Of a stretch of 64,000 bases of DNA, positions 6,509 to 42,576 are shown one piece after another. The notes under the pieces are model-generated. The model was not told where the DNA came from, made no database searches, and worked only from the letters and a program-made list of their open reading frames with translations. Every line of letters begins with the position of its first letter. The stretch's first letter is position 1. Where the stretch lies: the NCBI GenBank assembly GCA_026936335.1, contig JAPMXV010000044.1, positions 434,001 through 498,000 on the forward strand, read 5' to 3'. This DNA is from Mantamonas sphyraenae STR306. Its lineage: Eukaryota > Protista > CRuMs. The translations under genes were made by a program, and so were the position numbers.

Positions 6509-7515
6509 TCACTTCTTCCCCTTGCGCATGCCCGCTACAATGGCCTTGATGCGAGCCTGTGTCTCTGCAGAGGAGATGGCCTCGTACATAAGGTCTGCGC
6601 TGTCCTCGGCCTGCTTGCTGAACTGCTCCATCATGGGGCGACGGTAGTTCAGCTTGGTGTTGACACGAGCAAAACTGGGAAGCTTGAGCAGACGTTCCAC
6701 GTATGCGGTGGCCTTCTCAATGGCCTCCTCGGGAGAGCTGGCCAACTCATCCACCAGCTCGCATGCCAGAGCCTCTGTTGGGGACAGCATGCGTCCCTCC
6801 TTGATGTACAGCTCAGCCTTGCGCGGCCCAATCACAGAGGCATACGTCTGCGTGATGAACGCAGGCACCGTGACGCCCACAGGCACCTCGTTCAGGCCCA
6901 TGGTGAAAGGCCCGTCCATCATCACGCGGTAGTCGCATGCCATGGACATTACACACCCACCCGCCGGGTTCTCACCTGCAATGGCATTGGCGACAACCAG
7001 CGGCGTGCCGTAGATCTTCTTGAACACTGTAGAAACGCCAGTCGTGCCGTGGGAGGGGATTTGCGTCAACCGTCAGCCGCCAGCTCCACGTCTACTCTCC
7101 CCAAGCTGACCACTCCTCTGTTGTCTACCGTCCCACATGCACACTTACGGCCAAAGAATGCCTCCATAAACACGCGGAAATCCTCCGGTGACGGGTCCAC
7201 CAGCTGCTGGAAAATGTCGATGCCTCCGGAAAAGATGCCGCGCAAGTTCGAGGCCAGCACCATGCCGTGCTGCTTCTCGTTCTGCTCGATGCTCTCAATG
7301 ACCTCCACAACCTCACGGCAAAAGTCGGTCGACATGCCGTTCACCGGGGCGCGGTTCAGCAGCACCAGCGCATGGTTGCCGCGGTCCTCGACAATCACGC
7401 GCGGCTGCTCGTTGCCCACCTGCATGGAGGTGGCCAGACCACGCTGTGCGGTTTGCACACTGGCCATCGAGCGCACCACACTCGTTCTGCTGCTAGTAGA
7501 GACTCGGGAAAACAT
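6509..7515 (-). CDS. ECI1: Enoyl-CoA delta-isomerase (crotonase family), probably mitochondrial, ~294 aa
   Basis: Exons 7515-7149 and 7026-6509. R/S-rich presequence MFSRVSTSSRTS; motifs LNRAPVNGM, IFSGGIDI, GENPAGGCVMSMACDYRVM and MGLNE. Confidence 0.88.
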
Positions 7516-7690
7516 TCGGCTTTCGGTTGGTGGGACGGGAGTGGGGAGGGGTGTCAACTTGTGTGTCCATTGTGATTTGCATGGGTGCTTGTCGCCCCCC
7601 ACCATCTTCTCTTCCTCTTTCTCCATCCTCGTCCTTCCTCCTGCACACCCTCTTTCACCCACAGACACAGCCACCTCCGATTTCAGCTTC

Positions 7691-7733
7691 GCCGCTCAGC
7701 CACTCAGCCGCTCAGCCGCTCAGCCGCTCAGCC
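7691..7733. repeat. 8-bp tandem repeat GCC(G/A)CTCA x5 (x4 in copy 2 at ~12485-12519)
   Basis: Directly visible; lies just downstream of the Myb stop codon. Confidence 0.9.
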
Positions 7734-7752
7734 ACATGCTTCGTCTCCATCC

Positions 7753-10146
7753 TCACATCTCCTCACACTTTTCCTCCACCCGCTGTCGCTTGCCCAGCGC
7801 GCGCAACGCCTCAGCTGCAAACGCATCTTCCTCCTCATCAGGCGTCGACGGCCGACTAGAGTCGCTGCTGCTCGAATGCGTGCTTGCGCCACTCCACCCG
7901 CTCATCGTGCTCGCCTTGCGCTTGCTTCCGCTCTGCATCACATCCTGGATCGACGGCAACAGGTGCTTCATCTCACTGGACTGCTGCATCTGGCCCGCCT
8001 GCTGCTGCACCTGCTGGCCCTGCTGCTGGTACAGCTGCTCCAGCGCCATGCGCTGTGCCTGTGCCTGTGCCTGCTGTTCAGCCAGCTGCTGCTGTTGCTG
8101 CTGTTGATGTGCATCCTCCACTCGCATCTCCCAGCCACGCAGCTCTCCCAGCAGCTGGTGTTGCCATCCTCCAGGCTGCCCCTGCTGCTGTTGTTGAGAC
8201 TCCTGCTGCATCGCTTGCATCTGCTGTGCCAGACGCAGTTTCGCCATCTCCATCTGCATCTGCATTTGCATTTGCATGCGCAGTTGCAGTTGCAGCTTCA
8301 TCTGTAGCTGCTGCATGTGCGTCTCGATCCCGTTTCCTCCACCACTTCCGTATCCTCCCAGCAGCCCTTCCATCCCTCCCAGTCCACCCATCCCAGCCAC
8401 GTTGCTCATCCCTTCCACTTCCATCCTTCGTCCATGCTCTCCCATCGCAGATCCACCCTCGTCGCCATCCTCCACATCCTTTCCACCCCTCACCGACTTG
8501 CTGCCGCCGCTGCGACGTCGTCCACCCTTGCGCATAGACTTGCCCATCGTGTGGTGCGTCAGGGGCAGCACAAAGTTCCCAGCTTCGTCCAGCAGGTCGC
8601 CGTGGCACAGACATCCGCTCAGCATCTCCAACACTCGCGTAAACACCACGTAGTTCTGCTCGTTGCGATGTTCGTAGTGCCAGTTCTCGTCCTCCTCCAC
8701 AAAGTTGCTCTCTGCCACTGCGTCTCGTGCCTCGCGAAAGTCCAATCGTCCTTCGCTACGGTACAGCCGTCCTGCAATCACCTTGAACAGCTTTGCGTTC
8801 CAACGTCGGCGCACAGCACACGGCGGTCGTCCTTGGATCATCGACGAGATCTCCGCCCAGTGGTTTCCATGCTCACGCCACGCCTTGAACAACTGCACGT
8901 CCTCCTCTTCCGTCCACGGGCCGTGCTTGATGCTCGTGTCCAGTGCGTTCATCCAGTGCGTACGCACCTGAGACGTCGTGCGGTTCGGAAACAACGATGC
9001 AATCTGTCCAAAGTTGCCATTGAACTCTTCCACCGCCTCTCGCAGACGCTCGTTCTCCTCCTCCGACCACGGCGTACGCGAAAAGTAACGCCGTTGAGTC
9101 TTCACACCGTTCGCAGACCCCAGTGCAGACGTATATCGCTGCCGCACCTGTGCACACACAGTGTCCCAAACACCACGCCGTCCCACGACCCAGTTCCGAC
9201 ATCCGCCCATGCCCAGTGTACGCCCAATGTGTCCCGTTCGTCGCAAGCCACGTGTCAGCTACCCAAAAATGGCATGGAACCATCCACAACCTTCCCGTTT
9301 CGCACCCCTTTCCTTCCACGTCGACCACGTGCTACATGCATCACCCTCCTCCTTACCTGCTTCTCTGTCCGACCTGGCAGTCGCTTCGAGATCAGTGCCC
9401 ACTGGTCACCCAACTCATCGTATGCCTCGCGCAACACACGATCTTCCTCATCGCTCCACAATTCCTTCTTAATGTCCGGGTTCAGCGTGAACATGAACCG
9501 CTGCCGCACCTGCTCTCCCCGTCCTCCCTGTCAGTCCCTTGGTACCTGTGTACCTCTGCATCCTTTCTCCCACCCCCCCTCCGTCGTCCCATCACTTCCA
9601 AAAGCTCCAGTGCGAGGTTTCCGACACCAACCCCCTTTTTGTTCCCTCCTCTTTTTTCGTGCACTCACCTGCAGATATGTGCGTCCGGGCAGCATCTTGG
9701 CAATCTTGCTCCACGCGTTCCCGTGCTTTCCGTGCTCTTTCAGCAGGATGGCATCCTGCAGTGTGTGTGATGTGTCAGTACACGCGAAGCCGAAGCCTGC
9801 GTCGTCTGCAACTTTTCCTGCAGACACGCCACACTTCCTTTTTTTGGTCCGAAACCACACGCAAACCTCTCCTTGCCCCCACGCGATCTCCACCTGCTTC
9901 ACAATCCCCAAACACCCCCGCAAAACACGCCTCCACACAACATACTTCTTCTGCAGTCCATGCGCCTGACTTGATCTTCGGGTCCAGCGTATAGCGCCAG
10001 TGCTTTCGGATCGTCGACAAGCTTCGGTTCGGAAGAAGCTCCGCTGCTCGTTCAAAGTCAGGCTCGTCATCATGCGACAGGGTCTCTCGCAGGATGCGAT
10101 CCTCTTCGGCTGTCCATACTTGGATCTTTCGTTGCTTGCCGCTCAT
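7753..10146 (-). CDS. Five-repeat Myb transcription factor with Gln-rich C-terminus, copy 1 (~611 aa)
   Basis: Exons 10146-9946, 9755-9669, 9509-9357 and 9147-7753, all phase-0 GT-AG. Repeats begin WTAEED, WTAEED, WSDEED, WSEEEN and WTEEED, with IA..LPGRT-type recognition helices. Confidence 0.9.
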
Positions 10147-12342: not shown

Positions 12343-15048
12343 GGGTGTCAACTTGTGTGTCCATTGTGATTTGCATGGGTGCTTGTCGCCGCCCACCATC
12401 ATCTCTTCCTCTTTCTCCATCCTCGTCCTTCCTCCTGCACACCCTCTTTCACCCACAGACACAGCCACCTCCGATTTCAGCTTCGCCGCTCAGCCACTCA
12501 GCCGCTCAGCCGCTCAGCCACATGCTTCGTCTCCATCCTCACATCTCCTCACACTTTTCCTCCACCCGCTGTCGCTTGCCCAGCGCGCGCAACGCCTCAG
12601 CTGCAAACGCATCCTCCTCCTCATCAGGCGTCGACGGCCGACTAGAGTCGCTGCTGCTCGAATGCGTGCTTGCGCCACTCCACCCGCTCATCGTGCTCGC
12701 CTTGCGCTTGCTTCCGCTCTGCATCACATCCTGGATCGACGGCAACAGGTGCTTCATCTCACTGGATTGCTGCATCTGGCCCGCCTGCTGCTGCACCTGC
12801 TGGCCCTGCTGCTGGTACAGCTGCTCCAGCGCCATGCGCTGTGCCTGTGCCTGTGCCTGCTGTTCAGCCAGCTGCTGCTGTTGCTGCTGTTGATGTGCAT
12901 CCTCCACTCGCATCTCCCAGCCACGCAGCTCTCCCAGCAGCTGGTGTTGCCATCCTCCAGGCTGCCCCTGCTGCTGTTGTTGAGACTCCTGCTGCATCGC
13001 TTGCATCTGCTGTGCCAGACGCAGTTTCGCCATCTCCATCTGCATCTGCATTTGCATTTGCATGCGCAGTTGCAGTTGCAGCTTCATCTGTAGCTGCTGC
13101 ATGTGCGTCTCGATCCCGTTTCCTCCACCACTTCCGTATCCTCCCAGCAGCCCTTCCATCCCTCCCAGTCCACCCATCCCAGCCACGTTGCTCATCCCTT
13201 CCACTTCCATCCTTCGTCCATGCTCTCCCATCGCAGATCCACCCTCGTCGCCATCCTCCACATCCTTTCCACCCCTCACCGACTTGCTGCCGCCGCTGCG
13301 ACGTCGTCCACCCTTGCGCATAGACTTGCCCATCGTGTGGTGCGTCAGGGGCAGCACAAAGTTCCCAGCTTCGTCCAGCAGGTCGCCGTGGCACAGACAT
13401 CCGCTCAGCATCTCCAACACTCGCGTAAACACCACGTAGTTCTGCTCGTTGCGATGTTCGTAGTGCCAGTTCTCGTCCTCCTCCACAAAGTTGCTCTCTG
13501 CCACTGCGTCTCGTGCCTCGCGAAAGTCCAATCGTCCTTCGCTACGGTACAGCCGTCCTGCAATCACCTTGAACAGCTTTGCGTTCCAACGTCGGCGCAC
13601 AGCACACGGCGGTCGTCCTTGGATCATCGACGAGATCTCCGCCCAGTGGTTTCCATGCTCACGCCACGCCTTGAACAACTGCACGTCCTCCTCTTCCGTC
13701 CACGGGCCGTGCTTGATGCTCGTGTCCAGTGCGTTCATCCAGTGCGTACGCACCTGAGACGTCGTGCGGTTCGGAAACAACGATGCAATCTGTCCAAAGT
13801 TGCCATTGAACTCTTCCACCGCCTCTCGCAGACGCTCGTTCTCCTCCTCCGACCACGGCGTACGCGAAAAGTAACGCCGTTGAGTCTTCACACCGTTCGC
13901 AGACCCCAGTGCAGACGTATATCGCTGCCGCACCTGTGCACACACAGTGTCCCAAACACCACGCCGTCCCACGACCCAGTTCCGACATCCGCCCATGCCC
14001 AGTGTACGCCCAATGTGTCCCGTTCGTCGCAAGCCACGTGTCAGCTACCCAAAAATGGCATGGAACCATCCACAACCTTCCCGTTTCGCACCCCTTTCCT
14101 TCCACGTCGACCACGTGCTACATGCATCACCCTCCTCCTTACCTGCTTCTCTGTCCGACCTGGCAGTCGCTTCGAGATCAGTGCCCACTGGTCACCCAAC
14201 TCATCGTATGCCTCGCGCAACACACGATCTTCCTCATCGCTCCACAATTCCTTCTTAATGTCCGGGTTCAGCGTGAACATGAACCGCTGCCGCACCTGCT
14301 CTCCCCGTCCTCCCTGTCAGTCCCTTGGTACCTGTGTACCTCTGCATCCTTTCTCCCACCCCCCCTCCGTCGTCCCATCACTTCCAAAAGCTCCAGTGCG
14401 AGGTTTCCGACACCAACCCCCTTTTTGTTCCCTCCTCTTTTTTCGTGCACTCACCTGCAGATATGTGCGTCCGGGCAGCATCTTGGCAATCTTGCTCCAC
14501 GCGTTCCCGTGCTTTCCGTGCTCTTTCAGCAGGATGGCATCCTGCAGTGTGTGTGATGTGTCAGTACACGCGAAGCCGAAGCCTGCGTCGTCTGCAACTT
14601 TTCCTGCAGACACGCCACACTTCCTTTTTTTGGTCCGAAACCACACGCAAACCTCTCCTTGCCCCCACGCGATCTCCACCTGCTTCACAATCCCCAAACA
14701 CCCCCGCAAAACACGCCTCCACACAACATACTTCTTCTGCAGTCCATGCGCCTGACTTGATCTTCGGGTCCAGCGTATAGCGCCAGTGCTTTCGGATCGT
14801 CGACAAGCTTCGGTTCGGAAGAAGCTCCGCTGCTCGTTCAAAGTCAGGCTCGTCATCATGCGACAGGGTCTCTCGCAGGATGCGATCCTCTTCGGCTGTC
14901 CATACTTGGATCTTTCGTTGCTTGCCGCTCATGACTTGGTGTTTGCTTTCGACTATATGTCGGGTAATTGCGCAGTTATAAACGCTCTGGGAGCGATGGC
15001 GGGAGCGAGCGGGCGACGCTTGTTCTGAGCGAGATCGATGCCTACGGG
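12343..15048. repeat. Copy 2 of the ~2.7 kb direct duplication
   Basis: Matches 7549-10262. Confidence 0.97.
12539..14932 (-). CDS. Five-repeat Myb transcription factor, copy 2 (same predicted protein as copy 1)
   Basis: Exons 14932-14732, 14541-14455, 14295-14143 and 13933-12539. The two coding substitutions I found are synonymous. Confidence 0.9.
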
Positions 15049-34812: not shown

Positions 34813-37060
34813 TCATCGCCATTGCTCTCTCAGCCACTGCTTGACATCGTGTTCCGTGGGGTTGTTCTGGATTTGGAAACGGATCATCTCCTGTAGAATG
34901 ATACCGATTCGCGGTCCACTGGGGATGCCCAGAAGGTCGCTGATCTGGTTGCCCCGGACAAGCGGCGTCATCTCGATCGACTTGAGCACCTTGCCCTGCA
35001 TAAAGATGGCCTGTCGAAAGGCCTCGATGCGCACGTACGAAGACAACAGCATTTCCTTGTTCTCAGGCAGGCTGGCCGAGTGAAGCTGAATCCGCTCGAG
35101 GTCACGCTGGCTCAACGAGGTGTCCGTCACCGCACCAAAGTCCATCACAGACACTTCTGTGTTTTTGTCTTCGTCCACCATGTGCTGTTCCTCCGGCAGC
35201 ACGCTCAGCATCAGGCTCAGCTGCCATCGCTCGTGGCCCATTGCTCGAAGCCACAGCGCCGTCTCCAGCGGCAACGCGTTCAGATAGTCCTGAAACAGAC
35301 CGCGCAGACGCAGAAAGGGTCGCTTCATGGCAATGTTGCTGGGCGTTAGATCCTCATCGCTGTAGCGGCTGCTGCTTCGCTCCTCTTTTTCGCGGGCCAC
35401 CGCGTACTTGGATGCCTCCTGGAGCAAGAAATAGGCGTTTCGTGCGCCGTGGATGATCTTAAACACGGCCGAAGCGTCAGCAGCGCTGAATTTGAGGCTC
35501 TTGCTGATGAGGTTGTGGACGAGGTGGAATGCGAGCGAGCGGCCATTGAGTGACTCCACCATGTCACGCGGAGTGTAATCTGTGGTTGTGTAGGCATCGG
35601 CCACAGAGCAGGCGTGGAAAAGGATGGAAGCTAGGAATGCCAGGTGGCCATCTTCGCTGACGTGCCGCGAAGGCCGTGCTTGGCGGGAGCGCATATCCTG
35701 CACGACCGAGAGGTTGCGAAAGGCGCTGGACCATCCGTAGTTTTGGTTGAAGGGGAAAATGATGTTGAGGAGGGAACCGTTGTGGAGCAGCTCCACCAGG
35801 CGCACGTGGTTGCGCGAGTTGGTAAGCATCTTTTGCAACTCGACCGTCACGCGCTCACGCGACACCTTGCGTCGAAGCGCCTCCTGGACGTCGTCATCCA
35901 GGCATGCCAGGGTTGTCTCTGGATGGATGTTGAACCCGTACGTGGAGGCAAAGCGGATGACACGCAACACACGCAGCGGATCGTCCAGGAACGTCTCTTT
36001 GGGGGGCAGCGGGGTACGGATCAGGTTCTGTTCCAAGTCCGACATGCCCAAGTGTGTGTAATCCTCGACCATTTGTGTGTTGAGGTTATAGAACAGCGAA
36101 TTGATCGTCATGTCTCGGCGATGCGCATCCTGGCCGGGGGTGCCAAACCTCATATCCGGGATCCTCGAGTTGTGTGCGTATGTTTCGGAGCGCAAGTTGA
36201 CCAGATCGATCTCCATGCCAAACAGCGTCGTGCGCGTCGTCTGCAGGTGCTTCGACTGCGACGGATTCACTTTGATGTTGGCAAACCGCAGCTCTTCAAT
36301 GCCCTTTTCCACGCAGTAGTCGCTCAGGTACTTCGAGAATGCTTCTCCAGTCATGTTATCCAGGGCTACGTCGACGTCGTCGCCTTCCTTGCCCATGAGC
36401 TGTACACGGCCTTGTGTAAGTGTGCCGATTGCAGGACTCGGAAGTTTCTCGCCTTCCCCTTTGTCGCACGCACGCAACCCTGACACGTGCGTGCAGCTGT
36501 TCCCCTTGACCACTTACCTTGTTGCGCACCCAGCCGCCGGCAATGCGGAAATTGACGTCCAGCTTGTAGCGCAGCCGCACGTCTTCGAGGAGCCGGAACA
36601 GATTCTTCTCGCGCTTGTTCAGCTTGATCAGCGTGCCTGGAAACACCAGAGGCGGGCGCTGGTCCAAAGTGACTACGTTCTCTTCGCCCAGCGTGGCCAA
36701 GGCGCCAGAGGAGCTGTTTGCACTGCGCACGGGTTGGGACAAAGGAGAGGCCCGGTGCAAACACACCCTGCTGCGGTGCAGCACCCCGGAAGCGGCAGTC
36801 CCAGCTAACCTGTGTGTGTGTAGGCCACGCGCAAGGCCCTTGCTCCCGTTGGATGTGCTGGAGCACACGTGCAAGCTGCCACGCAGACGCAACGCGGCGT
36901 CTTTCCTGAGGTCAGGTTCGTTCCTCCCCGGGCTGCACTGCCGCAGCAGCTGGCCTGCCCGCTGGACCATGGCGTCCCTGCGTGGCACCAGTGCAGAGGT
37001 TGCCACGGGTCGACGCAACACATGAATGGCGGACGCCGCTGCTCGTCGGCGGCCAAACAT
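34813..37060 (-). CDS. CCA1: CCA-adding tRNA nucleotidyltransferase (class II) with presequence-like N-terminus
   Basis: Exons 37060-36518 and 36399-34813. Motifs AGGWVR, DVDVALD, NPSQSKHLQT, DLVNLRSETY..SRIP, RRDMTINSLFYN, DDPLRVLR and SRERV. Confidence 0.92.
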
Positions 37061-37084
37061 ACTACCCACGCTTTCTTGTTTGCC

Positions 37085-37767
37085 ATGGCGCAGTACCAAG
37101 CATCCGTAGGTGACCCTGTGTGCCGTGTTTCCTTTGTCGTCCATCCCACCTGGAGAGTATTGCTGGGTCTGGTTTGCCGTCCATTGGTGATCGCGGGCGC
37201 GTGCGGCGGCTGGTGGTCTTTGCAAACAAGGTGCTTACACGCCTCCCCTTTGCAACACAGAGGTCCTGGTTGCCATTTGAGGTGCTTGTGGTCTTCAACA
37301 AGTGGTACTCCATCCTGTATGCCATTGTGACCATCCTTGTGTACATATACAAAGGTAAGCGAGGACGCGCAGGGCCATGGCGCCAAAAACGGTTGCTTCG
37401 TCGCCGAGCTACGCACGCGGTGCTCACACAGCACTTCCCTCCCGCAGCAAACACCTTCCCCTACCCGCAAAATAGCCTTGGCGCAGAAATCTTTGGCGTC
37501 ATTGTTTTCTTCCTCCTCGAAATGGTGCGCAAGACGGTCGGCTCGCTCGCAAACAAACTCGAGAATGGTGGCGCCTGCCTTGTCTTTCTCGGACTCTCTG
37601 TGCTCGCCTCTGCCGCCCCTATCTATCTCATTGCCGGTCAGGTCTACATCACACGCTTGGACATTGTCATGGGTGCCATCTCCCTCTGCTTCATCGGCGT
37701 CGAGGCGCTCATGTCCCTTTTCATGGCCATCTCCTTCCAGCGCGCAGCCACCCTCCGCAAGGACTGA
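37085..37767 (+). CDS. TMEM216: Ciliary transition-zone membrane protein, TMEM216/TMEM17 family (~144 aa)
   Basis: Exons 37085-37105, 37261-37354 and 37448-37767 give SWLPFEVLVVFNKWY..YIYK..FPYP..LEMVR..GSLANKLE, with four TM helices. Confidence 0.78.
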
Positions 37768-37882
37768 ATAGCGAACAGCAGACATCGCACACATTGCATC
37801 ATCGTGGCCACTGCACGCACAACACCACGCATCCTGCTGCGGGAAGAACAATCACAATCAAAAACATCGTCCATTTCCTTCC

Positions 37883-38788
37883 TCACCGCCCCACGTACCT
37901 GTAGCGAGCCATGCTGGGCCCCACATAGTCGTACTCATCCCTGGAGATGGCATACAGGGGCGCTGTAGAGATGGAGGCCATGATGCTGCCGCCGATCCAA
38001 GTGCTGAACTTGCGTTCGGGAGGAGCGATGACACGTGGCCTAGCTGACGGCACGATGGCTTCCAGTTCCTCCTGGATGCGATCGGACAACCCCCTGTACA
38101 TGCTGGAGCCGCCGGCGAGGATGATGTTGTTGAGAAGATCGAGTCGCACCGCCTCGTCCACGGCCAGAACAGAGTCCAGAATCATATCCGTGACACCCAT
38201 CTCCTCCAAGCCTGCCAGAGAGGGTTCAAACAGGATTTCCACAGCGCGGTAGGCCTCGTTGCCCACAGAAATGCTCTGGCCATCGGGGAGCTCGTACATC
38301 TGCTCCGTGTCCTTGCCTTGATCGTCTTTGTCTTTGTTCGCAGATCCTACGTAGCAGGTCTTGCGCTTGACATCATCAACAATGTCCCTCTCTGCAGTTG
38401 TGGTGAAGCTGTACCCTCGTTCCGTCAAGATCTTCATCAGGTGATCGGTCACCGTGTCGCCACCGACCATGGAGCTCACCACTCCGTGTTCCACCACGCT
38501 CGTTTCGTAGATGGGCACCACAAAGGTCGTGGACGCTCCCACCATGACCACCAACCCAGTCGTGCGTCCGCTTGCCAGCAGAGCCAACACAGCCTGATCC
38601 GCTAGCATCACGCCTTGCACCCCGAACGTTTCAAACAGCATCTGCACATACTTCTCCCGTTGGGATGCCGGCAACATGGGTGCCATCGTCATGACCACGG
38701 TCGTCTCTTCCGGAACCACACGCAACTCATTGAAGAACGTGTGGTGCATCACCTTTTCAGCATCATCCCAGTTGACAGTAATGCTCAT
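37883..38788 (-). CDS. Actin-like protein lacking the first ~73 residues (actin C-terminal fragment, 301 aa)
   Basis: NWDDAEKVMHHTFFNELRV, FETF, QAVLALLASGRTTG, LMKILTERGYSFTTTAE, YELPDGQ, LAGGSSMY and APPERKFSTWIGGSI. The ORF is intact to the C-terminus, and an in-frame stop lies ~29 codons upstream of the ATG. Confidence 0.92.
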   Translation of the reverse strand: MSITVNWDDAEKVMHHTFFNELRVVPEETTVVMTMAPMLPASQREKYVQMLFETFGVQGVMLADQAVLALLASGRTTGLVVMVGASTTFVVPIYETSVVEHGVVSSMVGGDTVTDHLMKILTERGYSFTTTAERDIVDDVKRKTCYVGSANKDKDDQGKDTEQMYELPDGQSISVGNEAYRAVEILFEPSLAGLEEMGVTDMILDSVLAVDEAVRLDLLNNIILAGGSSMYRGLSDRIQEELEAIVPSARPRVIAPPERKFSTWIGGSIMASISTAPLYAISRDEYDYVGPSMARYRYVGR

Positions 38789-39003
38789 GGTAAACGGTAT
38801 GCGGGGCAGTTGATTTGGAGGCGGGTGCGCACCCTCTGGTCCTGCCTCTTGACGGATGAGGAAGGAGGAAGGTCAGGCAGAATTCGCCAACCTGGACATC
38901 CTTCCTCGCCTTCCTCGTTGGCAAACAAAACCGGCAGGTGGCACGGTGCCCGGTCACAACCAATATATTCTTCTGCACTTCACCGAACCACACCCATCCC
39001 ACG

Positions 39004-39756
39004 ATGAAGTTTGCAAGCGAACGCCTGTTCACGGGCGAAGAAGAGACCGAGCAGATCTTTGCCGACGAAGTGGCAGACGGCGTGCTCAACGCAGCACGCG
39101 AGCAACTGCAGGCCTGGCTGGAAGAAGCAGGAGCCTACAACAAAACATTCATCCCGCAGCTCATGAGCCTGTTGCAGACCAGGGAGCGCAAGGGTGATCA
39201 AGCAAGCAACGCCGGCAACCAGGCGATGTTCCAACAGCGCATGTCTGAACGCCTGCGCCAAGAGTCTTCTCGCAGGACGCAGCGCAGCAAGCGCTTGGCT
39301 GCACTGAAAAAGCAACTGGACGCCCAGGTGGGCACTTGGTCTGCCTCGAGGCGTGCCTTTCGCACCGACTCCTCCTTCCCCCAACAATCGACAAACGATC
39401 TGGGCGAGCTGCCCCTCCCTGTGGTCATTGACGTCGGTGGTGCCATGGTCAAGGCTGGTTTCGGCGGTGACGATGCACCCCGCGCTGTGTTTCCGTCGCT
39501 TGTGGGACGCCCCCGCCACCAGGGCGTCATGGTGGGCATGGGCCAGAAGGAAGCCTATGTGGGTGACGAATCACAAAGCAAACGAGGCATTCTCACCCTC
39601 AAACGCCCATTCGAGGCGTACCGCGCTCCCGAGCGTCGCTCTACCACGTCGCTCCACCTTCTCACCCGCGATCTCGACAGCGCCGACTCGGATGATGATC
39701 AAGAAAACTCATCCTTGGTGGTTGTAAACGCATGCAGTGGTAACGAAGGCGTCAGC

Positions 39757-39790
<34 letters not shown>

Positions 39791-41679
39791 GCAACAGCGA
39801 CGATGGTGCTCAGGGACAAGAACAGCAGGCCGAAGACGTGGTGGCTGAGCATCCCGTGTCCAACGCCAACGCCGTGATGGTGCAACTGGCAGAGTACACG
39901 AGCACGACCCAGAGCAGCAGCAGCAGCAGCAGCAGCAAGCACGCAGCAGACAACGTCAGTCACGCCACAGGAGATCCCATCCACTGCACGGGATGCACGG
40001 CAGTCCTCAATGCTCTCTCTGTGCTGCAGCCCATGTCGGAGGAGGACATCGAGGACGAAGATGCACCCAAGGACTACCTGTGGGAATGCGAGTTCTGCGG
40101 CGTCGAGAACGAACTGTGGATGGTGGCCAAGGAGGAGATTCCCACGGGTGCACGCGTGCAATACTTGCTGGAGCCTGCAAAGGCGCAGTCAGACGACTCA
40201 AGGTCGCGCCAAGGCATCGTAGTCTTTGCTGTCGACACATCGGGCTCCATGTCCTCCACCATCCGTGTGCAGACCAACAAGCTGACCAAAAACATGCGCG
40301 ACGCCGTCGAAGCGAACAATGACCGCATGCGGGAGGCCATGGGCATGACCAAGCAGGAGTGGGCCGCCGCAAGGCCTGCTTCCAACGGCAGCGCCTACAT
40401 GAGCAGGCTGGACTGTGTCAAGGCGGCCGTGCGGGCACAAATCCTCGCGCTGTGCGATTCTTCGCCCTCCACTCCGGTGATGCTGCTCACCTTCAACGGC
40501 AAGCTCACCATCTACGGCGATTGCTGCGGCGTCTCGCAGGTCGTCACGGGAGACGTGCTGTACGACAACGAAGAGCTTACTGCACGTGCAGAACTGTTTG
40601 GGTCGTGTCGTTCGGTGTCCGAGGCACGTGACAACCTGCTGGCCACCCTGGACTCGCTGCAGGAGAGCGGCGCAACCGCGCTGGGTCCTGCCATGACGGT
40701 GGCCAATCACTTTGCCCGTGCCACTCCGGGATCCAACATCATTGTGTGCACGGATGGTGTGGCCAATCTGGGCGTGGGTACCATGGGGAACAGTGCGCGT
40801 GTGCCCAAGGGTGTGCAGATGGCCGGTCTCACGGGCAAGTCGTTCTACTCCGATGTGGCTTCCCGCGCCGCCAGCAGGGGCACTCGCATCGACGTCATCA
40901 CCATCCAAGGCGACGACTGCAAGATGGAGATCCTCGGTCTGATGGCAGACACGACCGGCGGCAACGTCGACATTGTCGATCCCCTCAGCCTGGCTTCCAG
41001 CGTAACCCGGATGCTTCAGGACTCCATCATCGGCACAGACGCCAATTGCACGCTTATTGGCAACCACACGTGGCATGTGGACAGCCCTGCCATCGATCAC
41101 ACACGCTCCATGGACAATGGGGAGCGGTCCGCCGTCGCCGGTGTCAAGCACGCCGCACACGTTCACGTAGGCAACGTCAGCAAGTCCTCTCAGGTCACCT
41201 TTGACCTTCATACCACCCGCTACGTCAGCCAGGGCGCACATCCGTTTCAACTCCAGGTCGAGTACACCGATGGCGACGGTGCGCGGTTCCTTTCCGTGCA
41301 CACGCTCGAGCAGGCCGTCACCAGCGATCGCACCAGCAGCGAAAGCCATCTGGATGGATCCCTCACAGCCATCCACGCCATCCGCGTCGCCGCCAGTGCT
41401 GCTCACCAGGGAGACTACGATCAGGCTCGCCACACCCTCATCAGCATGCAACGCCTGCTCCAGCGATCCATGCACTCGGAGGCCGACCAACTCAACTACT
41501 ACTACTTTGTCAAGCAGGCCGAGAAGCTGGACACCTTTATGCGTCTCGCACAGACCATCGAACAAACGCTCCAAGTCAGCGGCAACACCGACGCACGCTC
41601 CGACCTCCGCAACGACGCAAACTCAAAGGCCATGTTCCAGTTTAAGCACCTCACAGAGTCAGGTTTTGTGTGTGTGTAA
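39004..41679 (+). CDS. Actin-N-fragment / Sec23-type Zn finger / vWA protein (cpRAS-family body)
   Basis: Intronless ORF. Actin N-terminal segment at 39418-39615; CTGC..CEFC Zn finger; [30 protein letters not shown] and [14 protein letters not shown]. Confidence 0.88.
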
Positions 41680-41688
41680 ATGCAGGCC

Positions 41689-42504
41689 TCACTTCCCTTG
41701 CCCAACTTCGTCCAGCAACTCCTTGGCCACCTGCGCGATCACACGAAAACGCAGCCCGCCCAGCAACACGCCGCCATACCACCGAGTCACCACCACCAGC
41801 ACGTTTTCACACTCCATCGACACCAGAAGTCGCAGCAGAGTGTCTCCAGCACGGTTCTCCCCGTCGTCCTCCCGGTTCTCGTGCAGCGAGCCGTCTCCTG
41901 TTCGAATGCGGAACGCATACATGTTGTGTGTCGCGTTTGCAATCTTGCTGTTCTCGTAAAGCTTGTTGACCACCGCCTGAACCTCCTCCACGCTCTCCAC
42001 GTGCGCATAGTGCGCCTGAAACTTGCTCTTTTTCACCGTCGACACGTTGCCCGTCACAATCATCGGCGTAGGCACACTCGAGTCCACCTCCTCCTCCACA
42101 TTCGAACCGCGGCTCCCTTGGTCAATGTTTCCCCACTCTTCACTCTGGCCTGCTTCTGGCGTGTCTTCGCTGTCGCCCTGTGGGAGAGAATCCGCATGGT
42201 CGTTCAGCCAATCGACCCAGCTGAACAGCACCACCTGCCCAGGCTCCCACAATTCCGACAAGCTGCGTTCTACTGCTCGTTCCTGCGAGCCTGTACATCC
42301 ACTGTGTCGCACAACGAGCCGCGGTGCAGCTTCGGCCGGGTAGTTTTCCGGCAGCTCAAAGTGCAACTCCCAACCGCTCCTCAACACAATGGCGTGCCAC
42401 CCCGGCAGGTCACTTTCCTGCATCTCCTCTTCGTACATTCCTTGCATCACCATCAGCTCATCCTGCGCCTCGTCACTAAGCGTCGCCTCCCCTGTCGACG
42501 ACAT
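41689..42504 (-). CDS. IMPACT: IMPACT/Yih1 protein (RWD + ancient UPF0029 domain); an upstream start is possible
   Basis: RWD segment LPENYP..AP; KKSKFQAH, KIANATHNMYAFRI, EDDGE.AG and VVVTRWYGGVLLG. Confidence 0.93.
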   Translation of the reverse strand: MSSTGEATLSDEAQDELMVMQGMYEEEMQESDLPGWHAIVLRSGWELHFELPENYPAEAAPRLVVRHSGCTGSQERAVERSLSELWEPGQVVLFSWVDWLNDHADSLPQGDSEDTPEAGQSEEWGNIDQGSRGSNVEEEVDSSVPTPMIVTGNVSTVKKSKFQAHYAHVESVEEVQAVVNKLYENSKIANATHNMYAFRIRTGDGSLHENREDDGENRAGDTLLRLLVSMECENVLVVVTRWYGGVLLGGLRFRVIAQVAKELLDEVGQGK

Positions 42505-42576
42505 CTCCCCACAGGCCCCACTGGTCCCGCCCGCGCACCACATCAGCTGAACCACACCCGCACATTGTCCCTGTCA

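Follow-up and report, generated by a model that had tools for sequence, protein, structure and literature searches.

The stretch of DNA considered here, 64,000 nucleotides from the protist Mantamonas sphyraenae STR306 (contig JAPMXV010000044.1, positions 434,001 to 498,000 of the forward strand; hereafter the window), is compact eukaryotic DNA of ~59% GC in which intergenic spacers are often 10-50 bp, and comes from a genome of 25 Mb in 78 contigs. Within it lie two divergent genes which between them encode the parts of one actin. A gene on the plus strand (39004-41679) encodes 891 amino acids from an ATG at 39004, here termed the scaffold protein, in which a piece of actin precedes a zinc finger and a von Willebrand factor A (vWA) domain, while an open reading frame (ORF) on the minus strand encodes 301 amino acids equivalent to actin residues 73-377, here termed actin-C. 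Residues 139-204 of the scaffold protein match positions 6-66 of the Pfam Actin profile PF00022 (E 2.9e-13), and the minus-strand ORF matches positions 69-406 of the 410 in the same profile (E 3.8e-83). The actin part of the scaffold gene (actin-N, residues ~8-72) ends in '...LTLKRPFE', the final actin residue being E72, and the actin-C gene opens with 'MSITVNWDD' where actin has 'HGIVTNWDD', its ATG occupying actin position 73 and its stop codon lying two residues past the actin C-terminus. Both by profile and by alignment, actin-N and actin-C are exact complements, with zero overlap and zero gap. Neither chain contains a complete actin fold, which is divided at 72/73 between two intact ORFs whose start codons face one another, 215 bp apart. 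No second copy of actin-C was found in the genome, and neither was a second N-terminal extension or an intact actin-scaffold gene. The only paralogues of the scaffold gene found there are two without cargo, comprising a zinc finger and vWA/trunk (L012, C40:98444-100414, ORF of 824 amino acids; and L013, C43:243073-244758, ORF of 639 amino acids).

Table 1. Features of the divergent actin-C and scaffold genes, in window coordinates.
Feature	Position	Strand	Content and basis
Actin-C gene	37883..38788	-	Rest of subdomain 1, subdomains 3 and 4; Pfam, alignment to fused and conventional actins
Head-to-head spacer, 215 bp, presumed bidirectional promoter	38789..39003	.	Between the two ATGs
Family N-terminus	39004..39417	+	MKFASERLF... 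motif, then acidic helix and coiled region; BLASTP, shared motif
Actin-N piece, residues ~8-72	39418..39615	+	Phosphate loop 1 in the first beta-hairpin; subdomain 2 entire, with its D-loop; Pfam
Ser/Asp-rich low-complexity linker, ending in pre-zinc-finger motif (consensus DTNV..LG.L)	39616..39945	+	
Sec23/24-type four-Cys zinc finger (GDPIHCTGC ... WECEFCG) and next strand region	39946..40215	+	Scaffold alignment (A1), Pfam, structural model
vWA / Sec23-trunk domain with intact MIDAS (DTSGS ... T ... D)	40216..41007	+	A1 columns, Pfam, A1 profile against Sec24A
Beta-sandwich and C-terminal helical domain	41008..41679	+	Pfam, A1, structural model, fold match

A first-pass annotation of this locus had recognised in the body of the scaffold protein the zinc finger and vWA domain of the circularly permuted Ras (cpRAS) family, devoid of Ras motifs and with the actin fragment as N-terminal cargo. 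Our data agree with this description. In the published description of the cpRAS family (Elias and Novotny 2008, PMC2430557), an N-terminal region is followed by cpRAS, a linker, a putative four-cysteine finger and a VWA/Sec23 trunk, and relatives that lack cpRAS are also reported. In an alignment of family scaffold regions including the window protein (A1), the four zinc-finger cysteines of the window protein (CxxC ... CxxC) and its metal-ion-dependent adhesion site (MIDAS; DxSxS, T, D) fall in invariant columns, those of the MIDAS being D97, S99, S101, T244 and D270. A search with the A1 profile returned cpRAS proteins at E < 1e-130, and the Atlas cluster named 'circularly permutated Ras protein 1' scored 0.97 with the window scaffold. 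Like cpRAS-VWA proteins, the window protein has a short N-terminal region, a cargo slot, a linker, a four-cysteine finger upstream of the VWA domain, and a conserved VWA/Sec23-trunk C-terminal half that groups with cpRAS rather than with Sec23/24, although the sister relation itself is weak. In contrast, the Pfam scan of the scaffold protein gave zero Ras, Roc or Arf match, and the permuted Ras (G3-G4-G5-G1-G2) that true members show N-terminal of the linker is absent, the cargo being instead an actin that is unpermuted but split between two genes.

The relationship of this scaffold to Sec23/24 is one of fold. Pfam matches to Sec23_trunk (residues 472-668, E 3.3e-5, 24 bits, slightly below the 27-bit cut-off), zf-Sec23_Sec24 (325-371, E 0.016), VWA_2 and Sec23_BS (720-772) are sub-threshold but mutually consistent. 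The A1 profile matched the solved structures of Sec24A (E 5e-19) and Sec23A (E 2e-14) from the trunk through the helical domain, and the top Foldseek matches of an AlphaFold model of the window scaffold (pLDDT, the predicted local distance difference test, 78; pTM, the predicted template modelling score, 0.76) were all to Sec23/24, over ~640 columns (E 9e-21, template modelling score ~0.56). The scaffold thus shares with Sec23 and Sec24 of the COPII inner coat both fold and domain order (zinc finger, trunk/vWA, beta-barrel, helical). However, the Sec23_trunk scores of the scaffold are 24-27 bits, against 186-215 bits for the three true Sec23/24 genes of the genome; no Sec23_helical or gelsolin Pfam domain was found in the scaffold protein, and it is not orthologous to Sec23/24. 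The scaffold belongs to the cpRAS/VWA family, with a Sec23/24-like fold, and is clearly apart from the genome's own Sec23/24. Atlas clusters with Sec23_trunk/VWA architecture from Asgard archaea (Thorarchaeota, Promethearchaeota) also scored 0.97 with the scaffold, and the archaeal ArnAB 'Sec23/24 core motif' structure (PDB 8s05) was a fold match to the scaffold model.

Relatives of the scaffold differ in what they carry at their N-termini. A word-based search with residues 300-891 returned 11 relatives at 26-33% identity, of which, by Pfam, P0001 has a canonical Ras domain ahead of the zinc finger and vWA domain, P0002, P0003 and P0009 are scaffolds without cargo, and P0004, P0007 and P0008 (1200-1322 amino acids) have a full actin (profile positions 2-410) ahead of the scaffold in one ORF; in P0005 actin and the scaffold occur together with a Deltex C-terminal domain. 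An exhaustive search with the A1 profile returned 1141 proteins at E < 1e-30, and among 80 N-terminal regions surveyed from the best 150 of these matches the cargo was Ras in 14, actin in 3 and SAM in 1. The Ras is in canonical order in P0001, P0118 and P0120, explicitly permuted in P0075 and P0159, and permuted in appearance in P0076, P0123, P0117 and P0137; P0120 (1967 amino acids) continues from Ras and scaffold into ankyrin repeats and a protein kinase. In P0075 the cargo runs through canonical Ras residues 20-156 and then 1-19, and in P0159 through 50-164 and then 1-43. As these two cut points occur in two separate, well-supported scaffold clades (support 100 and 98), the Ras permutation may have had more than one origin, or may have been remodelled.

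Actin is carried by eight homologues (P0004, P0005, P0007, P0008, P0055, P0133, P0144 and P0160), of which P0133 is the closest relative. The sequences of P0055, P0133, P0160 and P0144 begin within the C-terminal part of actin, which leads directly to the linker and zinc finger, and P0160 lies on an intron-bearing contig where the upstream actin exons are on the same strand and in canonical order. In all eight, then, actin is in canonical order or, where cut by the contig, has its C-terminal end abutting the linker and zinc finger. The motif MxF[AG]S stands at or near the N-terminus of most members examined, in every cargo class, and the window protein begins MKFASERLF. Its N-terminus is homologous to those of P0004, P0007 and P0008, residues 1-204 aligning by BLASTP to residues 1-266 of P0004 and 18-263 of P0008. 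Because the motif is N-terminal in every cargo class and also opens the window protein, the alignments place the cargo as an insertion between MxF[AG]S and the pre-zinc-finger motif. The actin-N piece occupies this slot, as the cargo does in the relatives, and so sits where the first-pass annotation had placed it, in the position normally taken by the permuted GTPase.

These assignments were supported by a scaffold tree of 58 rows (IQ-TREE quick search, LG+C20; long branches), comprising the window, the 8 actin-bearing homologues, 6 cpRAS proteins, 3 canonical Ras proteins, 4 Ras fragments, 30 random scaffolds without cargo and the 2 same-genome paralogues, with the genome's Sec23/24-like genes as outgroup. 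The window and exactly the 8 actin-bearing rows formed a clade of 9 rows with support of 99 in the Shimodaira-Hasegawa-like approximate likelihood ratio test (SH-aLRT). Canonical-Ras proteins formed their own clade (100), paralogues L012 and L013 grouped together (92) away from the actin clade, and Sec23/24 was set off by a long branch (99). The outcome that the first-pass annotation had named as refuting its reading, a vWA region grouped with Sec23/24 or an unrelated family and homologues without actin, was not what these analyses gave. The actin clade was sister to one cpRAS clade (98), with a second (100) nearby. This sister relation is weak (SH-aLRT 85), and it is on the actin clade itself that we rely. 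The window shares with this clade the N-terminal extension, the actin-N sequence, the scaffold and a near-identical C-terminal motif, QAEKLDxFMR (A1). It differs from it in that the members each have one full actin, encoded by one ORF or by exons that all lie on one strand, whereas the plus-strand gene of the window has only profile positions 6-66 and residues 73-377 are in a separate inverted gene. Among the relatives examined, the split state appears in this genome only. Taken together, members of the family have actin, a canonical Ras, a permuted Ras or no cargo at all in one and the same slot, each cargo in its own clade, which supports the suggestion of the first-pass annotation that this scaffold may repeatedly recruit NTPase folds. 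No description of an actin-carrying scaffold clade or of an actin-VWA fusion was found in the literature searched, and the actin-carrying branch of the cpRAS/VWA family is apparently undescribed. It is to this branch that the locus is best assigned, as a member that has been split naturally.

Since the relatives are canonical, the window is nested among them and the sequence ahead of actin-N opens with the family N-terminal motif, the simplest reading is that the window state is derived. The ancestral gene would have encoded the N-terminal motif, a complete canonical actin, the linker, the zinc finger, a vWA domain with MIDAS, the beta-sandwich and the helical tail. Codons 73-377, about four fifths of the actin, would have left this gene in frame and now lie inverted, 215 bp upstream of the scaffold start, with an ATG of their own, giving a gene pair presumably transcribed divergently from one short spacer. 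A single inversion cannot give this layout; the route would have to be either a pair of inversions with one breakpoint in common or an inverted duplication of the 5' part, after which each copy lost what the other kept. Two possible traces of the event were looked for in vain. Leftover actin codons ahead of the actin-C ATG were rejected as evidence, since the in-frame upstream peptide ends RIPFT as against KRPFE in actin-N, and the break at 72/73 does not correspond to known intron positions, which are at codon 63 in the actins of C71 and at ~85 in the relative L028.

We consider it probable that the locus arose by lineage-specific fission of one actin-scaffold gene and that its products still act as one, both being made together from the common spacer and the 65-residue actin-N on the scaffold docking the free actin-C to rebuild one non-covalent actin-like domain. 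Such co-expression and reassembly in trans are favoured because neither half should fold well alone. The intact MIDAS and Sec23/24-like fold suggest metal-dependent partner binding by the scaffold, and the rebuilt module would tether or regulate this metal-dependent adaptor. Sec23 partners the small GTPase Sar1, a pairing which echoes the Ras cargo of the cpRAS/VWA family and may serve as an analogy for the Ras-bearing relatives.

Both actin halves look selected. In the parts flanking 39515-39552, actin-N has ~80% amino acid identity to the genome's own actin and 52% identity at third codon positions, a difference which points to protein-level purifying selection rather than gene conversion. 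Actin-C has remained stop-free over 301 codons despite its divergence, while in simulations of neutral substitution, with indels not counted, 3-7% of sequences remained stop-free at 25-35% amino acid divergence. The phosphate loops carry the substitutions S14G, G15A, D154M, D157A, G158S and H161F, with Q137, G302 and K336 retained, and phosphate loop 2 is also degenerate in several members of the actin-carrying clade. With the phosphate loops degenerate, a rebuilt actin-like domain is more likely to be a structural or binding module than an ATPase. In structure prediction, as in all analyses, the two actin pieces were treated as separate chains or rows and never joined. A complex of actin-C with residues 131-210 of the scaffold protein was modelled with an ipSAE (interaction prediction score from aligned errors) of 0.92 in three runs, the best control giving 0.01, with at least 92% of contacts common to the runs, a partner pLDDT of at least 77 and an interface of 165-174 contacts; the mark used for such models is reached by 51 of 78 solved complexes and by 2 of 108 mismatched pairs. 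As actin is a heavily solved fold, what this model shows is the continued compatibility of the pieces with one actin fold, not their binding in the cell. The genome also has five conventional actin genes (L002-L006, on C37 and C71), of which the three on C37 are intronless and the two on C71 have a ~600 bp intron in codon 63 (phase 1, GTATGT...CACAG).

Several observations weigh against fission followed by reassembly. The evolutionary rate of actin-C is 3-14 times that seen for the actin domains in the intact fusions, with a branch of 1.36 in the actin tree as against 0.1-0.42, and this could reflect relaxed constraint. The same tree excludes actin-C from the genome's conventional actin clade (support 90/95) but gives it no positive placement among the fused actins, such that its origin from a fused actin rests on complementarity and adjacency. 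The score of the complex may come from the model's memory of the actin fold. No duplication at the breakpoint was detected when the spacer was compared with actin-N DNA (score 13, shuffled mean 14.5, 413 of 500 shuffles scoring at least as high), and the three sequencing runs that contain the stretch share one study of origin, so that the assembly may itself have been built from them. The long branch of actin-C, together with the degeneration of both phosphate loops and the evident ability of the scaffold to work without cargo in two same-genome paralogues and many relatives, would be consistent with simple decay, in which actin was broken, the scaffold keeps a vestigial stub or re-used D-loop peptide, and actin-C is dying or re-purposed, with no reassembly. 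We regard this outcome as unlikely, as the ~80% identity of actin-N to actin with third positions near saturation is hard to explain for a stub unable to fold alone, actin-C has stayed open over all its 301 codons, and the predicted interface is large.

The shared origin of the sequencing runs also bears on whether a mis-joined or mis-oriented draft segment could mimic two genes. This is very unlikely. A simple inversion error would place actin-C downstream of actin-N, not upstream of the gene start, and the plus-strand gene is in frame across the deletion point while the minus-strand gene has its ATG exactly at 73 and a stop two codons past the end of actin. The Logan contigs, an independent re-assembly of the three runs, contained all sampled 31-mers across both junctions, the shares of the 426 31-mers sampled over 37700-41700 being 1.00 in X1, 1.00 in X2 and 0.99 in X3.

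The first-pass annotation had raised the possibility that a circularly permuted actin survives here as a relic, formerly a single chain of the order actin(74-375), linker, actin(8-72), zinc finger and vWA, in parallel to cpRAS. The geometry of this proposal is right, in that flipping the minus-strand gene would give this order, but it is not evidence of ancestry. Some features of the family are in keeping with a parallel: the nearest non-actin neighbours of the actin clade are cpRAS proteins, at the weak support given above, and the segment bearing the phosphate loop adjoins the scaffold both in cpRAS and here. A circular permutation places the C-terminal part before the N-terminal part within a single chain, whereas here the pieces are on opposite strands and in two ORFs. 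Single polypeptides with actin-C before actin-N, for which the first-pass annotation had suggested looking, were found in none of the homologues examined; tabulation of cargo showed that homologues do carry actin, and all eight that do so have it canonical or have a canonical C-terminal end joined to the linker. A permuted ancestor is not supported, and we consider it extremely improbable, because these relatives are canonical, the window is nested in the clade that they form, and the supposed linker opens with the N-terminal motif of the family. We give equally little credence to rejoining of the pieces into the ancestral full-length protein by trans-splicing or programmed DNA unscrambling, since, although a pyrimidine-rich tract followed by AG lies ~55 nt upstream of the actin-C ATG and introns of the spliceosomal type (GTATGT...CAG) do occur in the genome, the plus-strand gene lacks a GT at its E72 boundary, no AG directly precedes position 73, no trans-splicing site at the break is convincing, the stop at the end of actin-C would require a second splice, the plus-strand ORF is continuous without rejoining, and pointer-like repeats do not score above shuffled sequence.

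Fission with reassembly has precedents in other proteins. Split-Doa10 (PMC3464245) and the heterodimeric sodium channel of aphids (PMC4332693) are reportedly naturally split eukaryotic proteins that arose by nuclear gene fission, and as at the locus described here, what was a single polypeptide in the ancestor now comes from two genes, with reassociation of the two products expected. In contrast to these, the cut here is within one compact fold, at the boundary of actin subdomains 1 and 2, rather than between domains or repeats, and the two genes are head to head. Nothing relevant on a natural split actin was found in the literature searched, and as a naturally split actin fold the locus would, to our knowledge, be without precedent. 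We propose tentatively, as a possibility somewhat short of even, that the locus encodes a natural two-gene actin, in which a 65-residue piece on a MIDAS scaffold and a 301-residue piece made from a bidirectional promoter reassemble in trans.

If so, a naturally split actin would be a rare test case for the fission of a highly constrained, chaperone-dependent fold and for the origins of permutation. It would illustrate, in an organism alive today, the fission step of the fission-and-fusion route by which circular permutations can arise, and would do so in a family where clades next to its own have permuted Ras on the same scaffold. This interest depends on both genes being expressed and on the halves associating. 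More broadly, a cpRAS/VWA family with a Sec23/24-like scaffold and one cargo slot, open to canonical Ras, permuted Ras or actin, provides a framework for the function of these uncharacterised proteins, for example in asking whether they are nucleotide-switch or cytoskeleton-tethered adaptors.

The pair of genes has a neighbour on either side. On the plus strand, 37120-37767 encodes a membrane protein of the TMEM17 family (Transmemb_17, E 8e-18), which we take to be a family of the ciliary transition zone. On the minus strand, 41689-42555 encodes an IMPACT-like protein with RWD and UPF0029 domains, its stop codon ~10 bp from that of the scaffold gene. Also on the minus strand is a gene of the CCA-adding / poly(A) polymerase family (34813-37225), in which the ORF at 34813-36513 matches Pfam from profile position 11 only and an ORF upstream of and overlapping it (36356-37225) has zero Pfam match; an intron or a long extension may therefore be present at the 5' end of this gene. 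Elsewhere in the window, the same pair of overlapping long ORFs (497 amino acids on the minus strand and 550 on the plus strand) occurs twice, at 7049-9969 and 12539-14755, 4786 bp apart, which suggests a tandem duplication of ~4.8 kb.

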